Positions 40,501-58,552 of a stretch of DNA of 64,000 nucleotides are shown here, in pieces (position 1 is the first letter of the stretch; every line of letters starts with the position of its first letter). The position numbers and the translations under genes are program-made. Below the pieces are notes generated by a model. That model did no database searches. It was given only the letters and a program-made list of their open reading frames with translations, and was not told where the DNA came from. The stretch lies in the sequence record MZ475891.1; one strand, written 5' to 3'.

Positions 40501-41481
40501 ATGCGTTTTGGTTTCGCCTGTAAACTGCTGGATGACAACGGTAAGCAACCGTACACGAACAAGAGCCTGAGCTATGCTCACTTCTCCAAGCTGTCTCAGA
40601 CAGAGCAGCAAGAAAAGCTGGTGCTCGTCGTCACACACAATCTGACCTCGTTGCTTGAGATGATCAGACACGTTGGTCGTCTGCGTACCGACTTGCGTAT
40701 GTTTCGAATCACAAGCGAACTACTTCCGCTGTTCACGCACCCGATGGTCACACGCATGTATCTCCAAACACACATGACCAAACTGACAGACACGATGTTG
40801 GCAACGTGTGGTGCAGCGGCTAGACGTCTCGGTGTGCGACTGTCATTCCACCCAGGTCAGTTTACCGTGCTTGCGTCTGACCGACCCGACGTTATGCTCA
40901 ACTCGATTAACGAAATGGAGTATCACGCCTACTGTGCGCAGGCTATGGGCTACGGTCGTAAGTTCCAAGATTTCAAAATCAACATTCACCTGAGCGGTCG
41001 TCGTGGTGCCGCAGGTTTCAGAGACGCCTACTCTCGTCTAAGCGATCATTGCCGCAAGATGATCACGGTAGAGAATGACGAGTACACTTCCTCGATCGAG
41101 GATTGTCTTGAGCTTGCCGACATTTGTCCTGTTGTTCTCGACATTCACCATCACTGGGTAATGACTAACGAATACATTCAGCCGACAGATGATCGTGTTC
41201 AACGTGTCATTGACTCGTGGCGAGGCGTTCGTCCTGTTGCGCATTACTCTGTGTCACGCCCAGAGTTCATACCGTCTACGGGTCTGCCTGATCAGAACAA
41301 GCTAGAAGCAAAGTCTGCCTCGCTGCGTGCTCATTCCGACTACTACCACAACGACAGCGTAAACGAGTGGGCCCTCAGCTTCGAGCAATTCGACCTGATG
41401 TGCGAGTCTAAAGCGAAGAATCTAGCACGCACGAAACTAGCCCTTTTTAAGGGCAACTCTGCACAAATATGGTCAAAATAA
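40501..41481 (+). CDS. uvsE: UV damage endonuclease UvsE/UVDE
   Basis: RFGFACK, MFRITSELLP, RLSFHPGQFTVLAS, KINIHLSG, VENDE, LDIHHHW, HYS, AHSDY, MCESKAKN. Confidence 0.93.
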   Translation: MRFGFACKLLDDNGKQPYTNKSLSYAHFSKLSQTEQQEKLVLVVTHNLTSLLEMIRHVGRLRTDLRMFRITSELLPLFTHPMVTRMYLQTHMTKLTDTMLATCGAAARRLGVRLSFHPGQFTVLASDRPDVMLNSINEMEYHAYCAQAMGYGRKFQDFKINIHLSGRRGAAGFRDAYSRLSDHCRKMITVENDEYTSSIEDCLELADICPVVLDIHHHWVMTNEYIQPTDDRVQRVIDSWRGVRPVAHYSVSRPEFIPSTGLPDQNKLEAKSASLRAHSDYYHNDSVNEWALSFEQFDLMCESKAKNLARTKLALFKGNSAQIWSK

Positions 41482-54406: not shown

Positions 54407-54409
54407 ATC

Positions 54410-54453
54410 TGGACAAAATAGAGGTAGCTAGAAAAAGCTGCCCCTGATATACT
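54410..54453 (+). promoter_or_regulatory. early promoter P8
   Basis: GCATAAATC-TGGACAAAAT N32 TG-A-TATACT. Confidence 0.8.
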
Positions 54454-54506
54454 AAAAGCGTAGCTTGTGCTGCGCTTTTTTACTTTCTGTCTGAGGAGAC
54501 AACTAA

Positions 54507-55157: not shown

Positions 55158-55595
55158 ATGAAATTTGATCAAGCCCCAACGAAAGCACAGCTCGTACTGC
55201 TGGCACTCGCTCTCGAATCCGTTCTCCTCTCTATGGAGAAAACGTTTATCAACCGTAACCTGCTGGAGCAGTTACTTGCGAAGTACGGCATCTCGTTTAA
55301 CGACCTGAAAGAGTTGCGCGAGTACGGTGAAAAGCATTCCGCCATCGGCACCAGCGTTGCTCAAGTTATGGAGATAGCTGCATTGAATGTGGCTCATCTG
55401 AAAACAGAGCCGAAGCCTGAATACAGTCAAGACGACCTTGATCTAATTCGCGTAGAATACGAGCCAATCGATACGTCTGTCCTGCGTCAGGGCGCTGTGA
55501 ATGATGGTGTTATCACAGTGCAGCAAGCAGCCACTTTTGAGCGTGATCAGATACTGACTGCTATTCTTGAGTACCGACTGCGCTCAGAAGCATAA
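55158..55595 (+). CDS. hypothetical protein
   Basis: GAGGT RBS before ATG 55158. Confidence 0.75.
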   Translation: MKFDQAPTKAQLVLLALALESVLLSMEKTFINRNLLEQLLAKYGISFNDLKELREYGEKHSAIGTSVAQVMEIAALNVAHLKTEPKPEYSQDDLDLIRVEYEPIDTSVLRQGAVNDGVITVQQAATFERDQILTAILEYRLRSEA

Positions 55596-55598
55596 ATC

Positions 55599-55642
55599 TG
55601 GACAAAATCGTGGTTGTAGCAAAAACCGTCCTATGTTATAAT
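55599..55642 (+). promoter_or_regulatory. early promoter P9
   Basis: GCATAAATC-TGGACAAAAT, -35 TTGTAG N17 TG-T-TATAAT. Confidence 0.85.
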
Positions 55643-55690
55643 AGAGATGTAGCGTAGACGTGAGGTATGCGCTATAAATTGAATGACGCG

Positions 55691-55790
55691 TTTTTGCTTG
55701 ACTGTAAGGTAGCGGTATCTTACAGTCCTTTTTCAAGTGGCTTCGAAGTTTGAGGCTTCTTGCGAAAGGGTTCGATACCCTTTAAGCGCT
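55691..55790 (+). ncRNA. candidate structured RNA element, copy 1
   Basis: GACTGTAAGGTA-GCGG-TATCTTACAGTC hairpin, then CTTTTT and a second long hairpin, then a T-loop-like GGG-TTCGATA-CCC. Confidence 0.5.
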
Positions 55791-55850
55791 TTCGGATTTA
55801 CGCGGTTTTCACCGACTGTGCTTTCATATTAAATCGCAAAGGAAATTGTT

Positions 55851-56672
55851 ATGCCAGAAGCACGCAAACCTCGCCCAGCTGATCGTTTCGCTAAAGCCCG
55901 TGCAGAGAAAAACTCACCGGAGCGTCAAGATGCGGCAGCCCAGCGCACGTATAAAGACACTCCGCCTAAATCTGTTCAGGTGAAACTTGATGCTGTGGCA
56001 GCTTCTAAGAAGAAAGTTTCACGCGGCCCCAAGGCATCTCGTCCGCGTCAGTCGCCTGTTGTTGACGCAGCACCAAAGCCTCGCATTCGTGATGAGGAAC
56101 GTGTGTACAATCTCGTACACATGATTCTCTCTGCGTGGAAAGCCGATGCAGAAAACGCGGCGGTAAGTGTGGGAATCATTAAAGTGTCTCGCCGTAAGAT
56201 CGAGGGTGCGTTACGCGATCTCAAGAATACGCGCTTCACTAAAATCCCAGGCTTAATCAATGACGTGCTTGTCTACAATGAACTGGTAGCTGAGTTCGGA
56301 CAGTGGGTGTACGTCGAGCACGACAGTCCTGATTGGATTTTTGTGCGCCTGCCTGAAAACAGCACGCCTGTGATTCGCGCTGACATTAGTTACGCCAAGA
56401 CGGGTGAAACTTCCACGTCTGTTTCGACTTCTAGTGAAGTTCTGCTGAAAGATCTTAGCGAAGACGAAGAAGATGAGATCCCCGATAATGTCGAGTACGA
56501 CGATGCGGACGAGACTGACGAAGACGAAGCTGAGCCGTATGACTACAGCGCTTGGTCGCTGAGTGACCTGCAGGCTTATGCAAAGCGTTATGACTTCCTG
56601 CAGCCCGACACTGAGGGGTTCGATGATCGCGAGAAGTTGATAGCAGCCATCGAGCTGGGGGAACAGCACTAA
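55851..56672 (+). CDS. protein with basic N-terminus, acidic tract and C-terminal HeH/Rho-N-like module
   Basis: 273 aa, AAGGA RBS. Confidence 0.8.
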   Translation: MPEARKPRPADRFAKARAEKNSPERQDAAAQRTYKDTPPKSVQVKLDAVAASKKKVSRGPKASRPRQSPVVDAAPKPRIRDEERVYNLVHMILSAWKADAENAAVSVGIIKVSRRKIEGALRDLKNTRFTKIPGLINDVLVYNELVAEFGQWVYVEHDSPDWIFVRLPENSTPVIRADISYAKTGETSTSVSTSSEVLLKDLSEDEEDEIPDNVEYDDADETDEDEAEPYDYSAWSLSDLQAYAKRYDFLQPDTEGFDDREKLIAAIELGEQH

Positions 56673-56681
56673 GCACAAATA

Positions 56682-56726
56682 TGGACAAAATAGTGGTAGT
56701 ATCTAAAGCATGACCTGTGCTACACT
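56682..56726 (+). promoter_or_regulatory. early promoter P10
   Basis: GCACAAATA-TGGACAAAAT N33 TG-C-TACACT. Confidence 0.75.
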
Positions 56727-56745
56727 ATAGATCGAATGCCTTGTA

Positions 56746-56820
56746 GTTTTTTGACTGTGAGTTACTTTCCGGCTCACAGTCCTTTTTAAAGTGCTCTCAC
56801 AAGAACGCTTTAAAAAGCAC
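56746..56820 (+). ncRNA. candidate structured RNA element, copy 2 (ORF-less unit between P10 and P11)
   Basis: GACTGTGAGTT-ACTTTCC-GGCTCACAGTC, then CTTTTTAAAGTG...CGCTTTAAAAAG. Confidence 0.55.
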
Positions 56821-56854
56821 AGACTGCCTGCGCTTTTGATAGACAGCATAAATC

Positions 56855-56898
56855 TGGACAAAATCATGGTTGTATCAGAATGCTGCCTGTCATACACT
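56855..56898 (+). promoter_or_regulatory. early promoter P11
   Basis: GCATAAATC-TGGACAAAAT, -35 TTGTAT N17 TACACT. Confidence 0.8.
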
Positions 56899-56959
56899 TT
56901 AATGAGTCGAGCAATAGTGCTCGCAACAAACTAAATCCCAATACTGAGGAGTATTACAC

Positions 56960-58552
<1,593 letters not shown>

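Follow-up and report, generated by a model that had tools for sequence, protein, structure and literature searches.

Gene 55851 of the Erwinia jumbo phage pEa_SNUABM_13 is preceded by a structured RNA of ∼190 nucleotides (nt). The DNA analyzed (the window) comprises 64,000 nt of the phage record (MZ475891.1, 264,714 bp), window position 1 being record position 186,001; coordinates are those of the window and features lie on its plus strand unless stated otherwise. An earlier note on the letters of this DNA had described an RNA element in two copies, at 55700–55768 and 56753–56817, and had proposed either a family of phage small RNAs or an attenuator that governs read-through into gene 55851. 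That the element lies in the leader of this gene was confirmed by a covariance model in 27 of 27 genomes or contigs: copy 1 is not free-standing but is the 5′ half of the leader, which extends from hairpin P1 to the start codon. On balance, this leader is probably a conserved, folded cis-regulatory element of an early gene family in Alexandra-, Yoloswag-, and Rivs-like jumbo phages. The RNA family is new, whereas its general kind, the structured regulatory leader, is known; the mechanism discussed below is plausible but unproven. A further hairpin (P4), a predicted pseudoknot beside the ribosome site, and the tRNA annotation of the same stretch had been missed in the note.

Conservation and folding of the leader

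The covariance model was trained on 15 leaders and matched against the 27 genomes or contigs, 10 of which were contigs obtained via diverged protein homologues of gene 55851. The relatives covered were Alexandravirus, Yoloswagvirus, and Rivsvirus phages of Erwinia and Dickeya, as well as metagenomic contigs. In each of the 27, the full-length model matched (140–203 bits) and the match ended 9 nt inside the homologue of gene 55851. The complete genome of pEa_SNUABM_13 gave one full match (copy 1, 170.8 bits) and one partial match (copy 2, 35.7 bits). Such a search of relatives had been proposed beforehand, together with a comparison with Rfam; in the latter (Rfam 15), no relevant family matched the window or four relatives. 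A metagenome match (L033) was discarded as chance similarity within coding sequence.

Covariation was counted in 26 distinct leader sequences over 49 pairs, with 500 column shuffles as the control. Standard pairs occupied 93.5% of the pair cells, compared with 84.2% in the column shuffles and 34–52% when the partners were slid by one to three columns. Changes on both sides were found for 23 of the 49 pairs (109 cells); the shuffles yielded 13.4 and 25.8, respectively, and none of the 500 equaled the observed values. RNAalifold, unprompted, found P1, P3, and P4. The compensatory swap that had drawn attention to the element, an A-T as the seventh P1 pair of copy 1 and a G-C in copy 2, is present as claimed and proved to be one of many, as all 12 P1 pairs covary across relatives. 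A plain recent duplication, the outcome that the note had set against its proposal, is not borne out, since the relatives show structure-preserving changes.

G.U pairs are frequent, but on the plus strand only, and the structure is therefore one of the plus-strand RNA. This observation also bears on whether the inverted repeats (CCTTTTTAAAG..CTTTAAAAAGG or GCGGTTT..AAACCGC) could instead be DNA-level operators bound by a protein, for example, the product of the downstream gene. Despite the fact that the arms are conserved in sequence and that the downstream protein has a weak terminal HeH-type DNA-binding-like motif, this is very unlikely: G.U pairs restricted to one strand are tolerated and kept, the helix interiors covary, the motifs do not occur elsewhere in the genome beyond chance, and the sites lie 90–190 nt downstream of the promoter.

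The two copies have P1, CUUUUU, and P2 in common, as had been described, and both regions fold better than shuffles (z ∼ −3). At the start of the predicted transcript, the minimum-energy fold contains a 5′-proximal hairpin, P0 (55650–55674); relatives have a hairpin of different sequence at the equivalent position. P1 (55700–55727) comprises 12 base pairs (bp) and a GCGG tetraloop (−15.0 kcal/mol); its 12 pairs all change on both sides, and 96% of the cells are paired. The joint that follows, C plus five U (C+U5; 55728–55733), leads into P2 (55734–55762), predicted to consist of a lower stem (CAAG/CUUG), a 1×1 mismatch, and an 8-bp upper stem (4 of 11 pairs double-changed, 92% of the cells paired). 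P3 (55765–55783; AAAGGG/UUCGAUA/CCCUUU) looks like the T-arm of a tRNA, with two of six pairs covarying and 99% of the cells paired. Its 5′ strand resembles a Shine–Dalgarno (SD) sequence, and its 3′ strand plus the following base resembles an anti-SD. The P3 loop is kept in most leaders, and R57 is kept in one. The P4 hairpin (55784–55823), which RNAalifold found independently, is long, is interrupted by an internal loop, and ends in an apical loop of 16 nt; 5 of its 13 pairs are double-changed, including a basal A-U specific to the window. A closing helix that would join the U-rich stretch ahead of P1 to the SD region appeared promising when sequences were folded singly but was dropped, as shuffles did equally well and several lineages lack it.

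The 3′ half of the leader is more conserved than gene 55851 itself: between genera, the last 95 nt are 76–97% identical, the coding sequence 55–79%, and the 5′ half of the leader 49–82%. The two-copy family of small RNAs suggested in the note does not fit these data, copy 1 being the front of a gene-fused leader (27 of 27) and copy 2 a truncated relative. If the locus had a dual function, the promoters would mainly yield short trans-acting RNAs that end in U5, of ∼85 nt (copy 1) and ∼55 nt (copy 2), directed at host or phage targets. Copy 2 does have a promoter and a terminator-like hairpin, with no gene before the next promoter, and a hairpin with a U-tail matches Hfq-type 3′ ends. However, the stretch upstream of P1 is the least conserved one (49–82%) and differs between the copies, conservation is highest downstream of U5, in sequence that a terminated RNA would lack, and the element is invariably joined to a single gene. 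A trans-acting role is therefore improbable.

Over 1.8 kb, pEa_SNUABM_13 is 96–98.5% identical to its closest relatives (L002–L005), yet only 91.8% over the leader. The differences (55765–55850) cluster in the P3 loop, the base of P4, and the spacer between SD and AUG, and they preserve pairing. The window's version of 55765–55850 is also present in a 265-kb ENA contig (L047), which suggests recombination inside the leader, with a version common to the window and L047. In Yoloswag, the annotated gp311 (L017 1428–1625), an open reading frame of 65 amino acids, falls wholly within the conserved leader RNA and overlaps the beginning of the real gene; gp311 is probably not a gene.

A predicted pseudoknot beside the ribosome site

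The P4 loop contains GCGGUUU (55802–55808), which is complementary to AAACCGC, a 7-nt segment that ends immediately before the SD. In the window, this 3′ strand reads AAAUCGC (55831–55837), the C-to-U change retaining a G.U pair. All 7 bp can form in 26 of 26 leaders (100% paired). Within the main family, the pseudoknot shows no covariation because both strands are invariant there. The abutting SD region (AAAGGA) is invariant among relatives and, together with the spacer and the start codon of gene 55851, spans 55838–55853.

Decisive support for the predicted pseudoknot comes from paralogous leaders. Two metagenomic contigs, L043 and L051, each contain a second, diverged leader (L043 608–779; L051 1341–1509) preceding a paralogue of gene 55851 (771–1235 and 1501–1983, respectively). 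The paralogous genes are short (154–160 amino acids) and match the core of the gene 55851 product; that of L043 is 31% identical to the core of the window protein (E 2e-18), and that of L051 is 57% identical to the L043 paralogue. No relative of the paralogous gene was found in the viral contig collection. As a diverged leader precedes each diverged paralogue, leader and gene were duplicated together. The paralogous leaders retain P1, the U5 joint, a long P2, P4, and the complementarity between loop and downstream segment, the strands of which are GCGGCCU/AAGCCGC and GUGGCUU/AAGCCAC compared with GCGGUUU/AAACCGC in the main family. Among these three sequence versions, two positions have compensatory changes on both strands, and the duplex ends 10–13 nt upstream of the AUG in every variant. 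L051 contains, in addition, a P1-U5-P2 module (2077–2207) that runs directly into an SD and ATGCCAGCA; no gene is called there.

The leaders of E. coli rpsO and T4 gene 32 are pseudoknot translational operators. Like these, the leader of gene 55851 has a predicted pseudoknot at or near the ribosome site, a pairing between loop and downstream segment that evolution has maintained, a gene product that is a candidate autoregulator, and coinheritance of leader and gene. Unlike in these operators, the pseudoknot strand stops before the SD instead of containing it, and P1 to P3 have no counterpart. We favor a cis-regulatory leader in which the pseudoknot and P4 would form the core translational operator, with P1-U5 as an attenuator or insulator and P3 as an accessory switch arm.

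Proposed attenuation, alternative folds, and possible processing

C+U5 is near-invariant in the 27 leaders and in the paralogous modules. The claim that P1 and U5 resemble an intrinsic terminator was upheld in that a stable hairpin is directly followed by C+U5 and both copies rank among the best terminator-like sites of the region. P1 energies range from −13.6 to −21.3 kcal/mol across leaders, and the stem sequences are unrelated, yet the spacing from P1 to the U-run is essentially fixed (exceptions are U4 in AD1 and a 3-nt spacer in one contig). Selection for termination or pausing would be expected to produce a fixed spacing of this kind despite wholly changed stems. The lambda pR′-tR′ region with its short 6S transcript is a leader attenuator that uses an intrinsic terminator. 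In attenuators of this type, as here, a promoter is followed by a hairpin and a U-run within 30–60 nt ahead of the controlled gene, the expression of which needs read-through. Here, in contrast, only five U are present and they are matched by a downstream purine run, the most conserved structure lies past the terminator-like site, and neither an antiterminator factor nor an alternative upstream hairpin was found.

The U-tract (segment “a”) can pair with AAAGG of P3 or, in most relatives, with an A5, and this pairing is possible in 27 of 27 leaders. The note had taken the T-arm look-alike and the 3′ strand of P2 to be mutually exclusive. For the short P2 (CAAG/CUUG) this does not apply, as there is no overlap; for the extended P2 (CCUUU:AAAGG), competition with P3 does exist. 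The extended P2 and P3 were compared in 17 leaders, and in 14 of these they lie within 0–2 kcal/mol of each other. Both alternative pairings are possible in all 27 leaders. The further proposal that alternative folds control read-through was not supported: the pairings involve the SD- and anti-SD-like segments, and in the folds of both copies and of relatives, no competing upstream antiterminator fold was seen, the alternatives found lying downstream of the U-run. Such folds cannot decide termination at P1 and would therefore act on translation. In the SNUABM_25 clade, a new P3 loop is complementary to a new SD-AUG spacer, which lengthens the anti-SD helix into the predicted ground state. The anti-SD helix and the pseudoknot are mutually exclusive, because one base is common to both.

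The following sequence of events is proposed. Host RNA polymerase would initiate at a sigma-70-like promoter ∼50 nt upstream. P1 followed by C+U5 would then act as a weak intrinsic terminator or pause site, attenuating transcripts from this promoter and from those upstream and leaving short P0-P1 RNAs. In transcripts that read through, the U-tract would be taken up as the base of P2, and access of the ribosome would be set by the pseudoknot. In most leaders, a competition among CCUUUUU, AAAGGG, CCCUUUG, and the SD segment CAAAGGA may be added: with P3 formed, the anti-SD would leave the SD free; with the extended P2 formed instead, the SD could be covered by CCCUUUG. As to the trigger, the most economical guess is that the gene 55851 product binds its own leader, and this is held to be the most likely trigger because leader and gene stay together through duplication. 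In a farther-reaching version, to which we give little credence, the protein would bind the nascent P2–P4 of its own leader, as well as the truncated modules, and reprogram the polymerase (antitermination as by N/nut or put) or the ribosome, thereby timing the early-to-middle switch, while a host tRNA-binding factor would be recruited as a cofactor through the T-arm mimic. It is just as doubtful that leader and gene constitute a self-contained regulatory pair of a new type, as this version would have it. The basic, disordered N-terminal tail of the gene 55851 product loosely recalls arginine-rich RNA-binding tails.

Several observations weigh against the leader working in this manner. The U-tract, a C and just five U, precedes A-rich sequence; by a rough score of the d'Aubenton-Carafa type, the site lies below or close to the threshold for a terminator; and P1 loops of 10–30 nt, as well as the branched P1 forms of some modules, are unusual for terminators. 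Because a purine run farther downstream (A5 or, in P3, AAAGG) invariably provides a partner for U5, the latter may be kept as a helix strand and not as a signal for termination. Covariation for the four-segment switch is thin and partly contradictory: one double change (SNUABM_35) supports it, but two other leaders carry the P3 change of SNUABM_35 without the matching change in the lead of the U-tract. Paralogous leaders lack any P3. Autoregulation, finally, is a guess about a product without a recognizable family.

The role of P1-U5-P2 is the only point on which a processing or stability element, possible though rather unlikely, would differ from the regulatory leader, with which it is otherwise compatible. 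P1 on a long P2 could be an RNase III substrate, or the U-rich joint an RNase E site, and cleavage would separate a P1-ended fragment from a hairpin-protected mRNA, as happens in the early RNA of T7 or in the leader of lambda N. In line with this, P2 is a helix of 16–20 bp abutting P1 in most leaders and in copy 2, the AU-rich base of this helix has kept its sequence in paralogous modules that have otherwise diverged, and the 5′ hairpin after every promoter of the family described below suggests selection for RNA stability. The minimum-energy fold of copy 1, on the other hand, leaves the U-tract unpaired, and P2 has merely 12 bp with a mismatch.

HK022 putL and putR, antiterminator RNAs in two copies of related sequence, of ∼70 nt with two stem-loops, are located just downstream of two early promoters (PMC9378689). 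A put-like RNA, the adjacent stem-loops of which would bind the polymerase so that later terminators are ignored, has a similar layout, and the resemblance is in layout only: two copies, each after a promoter, ∼70 nt and two stem-loops long, similar to each other in sequence but with compensatory differences. The put sites carry no annotation in NC_002166. A U-run between the stems is not known for put, and the RNA adopts a V shape with a triplex that docks on the polymerase, the beta′ zinc domain being bound. An internal hairpin with U5, in contrast, would itself halt or pause the polymerase, and P1, which ranges from a 28-nt hairpin to branched forms of >60 nt, is ill-suited to a fixed docking shape. 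The element also continues into a translational leader, some modules follow genes without a nearby promoter, and those of Yoloswag are in tandem. A put-like function is thus quite improbable.

The tRNA annotation, putative early promoters, and copy 2

GenBank annotates 55695–55789 as a tRNA-Glu(ttc) of 95 nt, and ARAGORN reproduces the call, drawing a cloverleaf whose acceptor stem has 7 bp and whose T-arm is perfect. The annotation is a false positive, an artefact that arises because P3 resembles a T-arm: it has the G-C closure and a loop of the UUCRANN type (UUCRAUA), with GGGUUCGAUACCC present in the window and most leaders, but the rest of a tRNA is absent. The Rfam tRNA model RF00005 gave no match at gathering score in the window and none even at E ≤ 10 in 55560–56960. 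The putative tRNA, with its 95 nt and long extra arm, falls outside the class I size of Glu tRNA; its anticodon stem has one mismatch and two wobbles, and its “anticodon” lies inside the conserved U5 joint. Pairing of the acceptor-like helix is possible in 89% of the cells, but among 17 leaders compared, there were zero compensatory changes and the top two pairs were broken in 5–7; the helix is also incompatible with covarying pairs of P1, P3, and P4, among them the basal A-U of P4 that is specific to the window. ARAGORN found no tRNA in six orthologous leaders, none in SNUABM_25, and no other in the 264.7-kb genome. In the closest relatives (SNUABM_25, 34, 45, and 21), the T-loop sequence is replaced by CAAAUGU or CAAACGU and the closing pair is changed while the P3 hairpin is kept, and their records have no tRNA annotated at the site. 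That a genuine but unusual tRNA or tRNA-like RNA is excised here by RNase P, to serve translation or as a decoy, is largely refuted and scarcely conceivable.

Both copies follow a predicted early promoter, as the note had stated. These promoters are sigma-70-like, and P1 starts 58 nt past the end of the −10 hexamer in copy 1 and 27 nt past it in copy 2. Promoter 1 (55593–55642) consists of an upstream block, CTGGACAAAAT, which contains the stop codon of the upstream gene, a −35 TTGTAG (55614–55619), a 17-nt spacer, and a −10 TATAAT (55637–55642); it is conserved ahead of the leader in relatives. Promoter 2 (56676–56726) is of an early type with the same motif and a −10 TACACT (56721–56726). 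The promoter motif occurs eight times in the window compared with 2.7 expected, and a seven-site promoter family (the CTGGACAAAAT block, a TTGTNT-like −35, a 17-nt spacer, and a TATAAT-like −10) was delineated at 41469, 44898, 50366, 54409, 55598, 56681, and 56854, the activity of which is presumed from the motif. Each of the seven has a small hairpin within ∼5–30 nt, at the 5′ end of the predicted transcript. A CCTTTTTAAG site at 41442 was rejected, as it lies in coding sequence and has no hairpin.

These promoters recall the PeSL cassettes of T4-like phages, in which a strong early promoter of the sigma-70-like kind, preceded by an AT-rich block, is joined to a stem-loop that is able to terminate transcription and is usually located between −35 and −10 or over the −10; PeSLs are repeated and intergenic, flank variable genes, and are tied to gene loss or gain between close relatives (PMC2839356, PMC4122927). 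The seven promoters likewise have an AT-rich block and a nearby hairpin, and a homologue of gene 55851 has been lost in SNUABM_30 and phB78. In contrast to PeSLs, however, P1 lies 27–58 nt downstream of the −10, the phage group is a different one, and PeSLs are without P2–P4 or a pseudoknot. Only one hairpin abuts a −10: in the family promoter at 54409–54479, an 11-bp hairpin (54454–54479, followed by a T-run), flanked by A- and T-runs, begins 1 nt past the −10 (TATACT). Its arms (AAGCG..CGCTT) resemble the base of P4. As the likely start site is in its 5′ arm, this hairpin could, in a PeSL-like manner, stop upstream transcripts and spare those of its own promoter.

In copy 2, the predicted P1 (56753–56781; model match 56736–56874) has 11 bp and a 7-nt loop, and it is followed by C+U5 (56782–56787) and a long P2 (56782–56817), in which the U-tract is the 5′ strand and pairs with a downstream A-tract. 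Next comes a small hairpin (56813–56837), flanked by A- and T-runs and terminator-like on both strands (with a weak terminator-like match on the minus strand); it has a counterpart in L043 and could represent a reduced P4. Copy 2 lacks P3, the pseudoknot, and a gene, the next promoter being at 56854. Its similarity to copy 1 exceeds chance: a model built solely from copy 1 orthologues finds copy 2 (35.7 bits, E ∼1e-8) and nothing else comparable in 264.7 kb. Copy 2 has a lead-in and a P2 like those of the Alexandra type of leader; copy 1 belongs to the SNUABM_5/SNUABM_30 type. Copy 2 has orthologues in Yoloswag, at the equivalent position (L017 2783–2869; P1 GACUGUGUGGC), and in L043. For these reasons, copy 2 is an old truncated paralogue and not a recent duplicate of copy 1. 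It has been left between gene 55851 and the gene 56960 promoter, and termination or insulation is most likely its sole function. Alexandra-type phages contain similar P1-U5-P2 modules after stop codons, with no promoter nearby. In Yoloswag, an intergenic region of 540 nt (L017 1053–1590) contains three tandem P1-U5-P2 modules, two of them between promoter and gene. In SNUABM_30 and phB78 (L018 1455–1654 and L019 1455–1653), from which the gene 55851 homologue has gone, P1, P2, and a decayed P3 are fused to the next promoter, an arrangement that suggests a deletion between cassettes.

Gene 55851 (55851–56672) encodes 273 amino acids with a basic N-terminal tail, a conserved core (∼80–180), an acidic tail, and a weak HeH/Ish1-like end. 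Searches of PDB profiles, the ESM Atlas, Pfam, PHROGs, and NCBIfam with the product returned nothing useful; its homologues form 56 clusters, all unnamed and almost all on contigs of jumbo-phage size. One such contig of 266 kb with the same gene and leader (L041, GCA_007314735.1) is filed under a Salmonella enterica Infantis assembly. Of the 344 features of the 264.7-kb genome, nearly all are annotated as “hypothetical protein.”

For the databases, the sole “tRNA” of pEa_SNUABM_13 has to be corrected, as it is no tRNA, and such calls inflate tRNA counts of phages. The cassettes of promoter and hairpin would extend a PeSL-like organization, with traces of gene loss at cassettes, to a phage group unrelated to the T4 type. 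To our knowledge, early gene regulation in jumbo phages is almost unstudied, and the leader provides a structured RNA motif from these phages, absent from Rfam, with four covarying helices and a predicted pseudoknot. As this motif is more conserved than the protein and has remained attached to its gene through duplication, it marks an unnamed gene as a tightly controlled early function.

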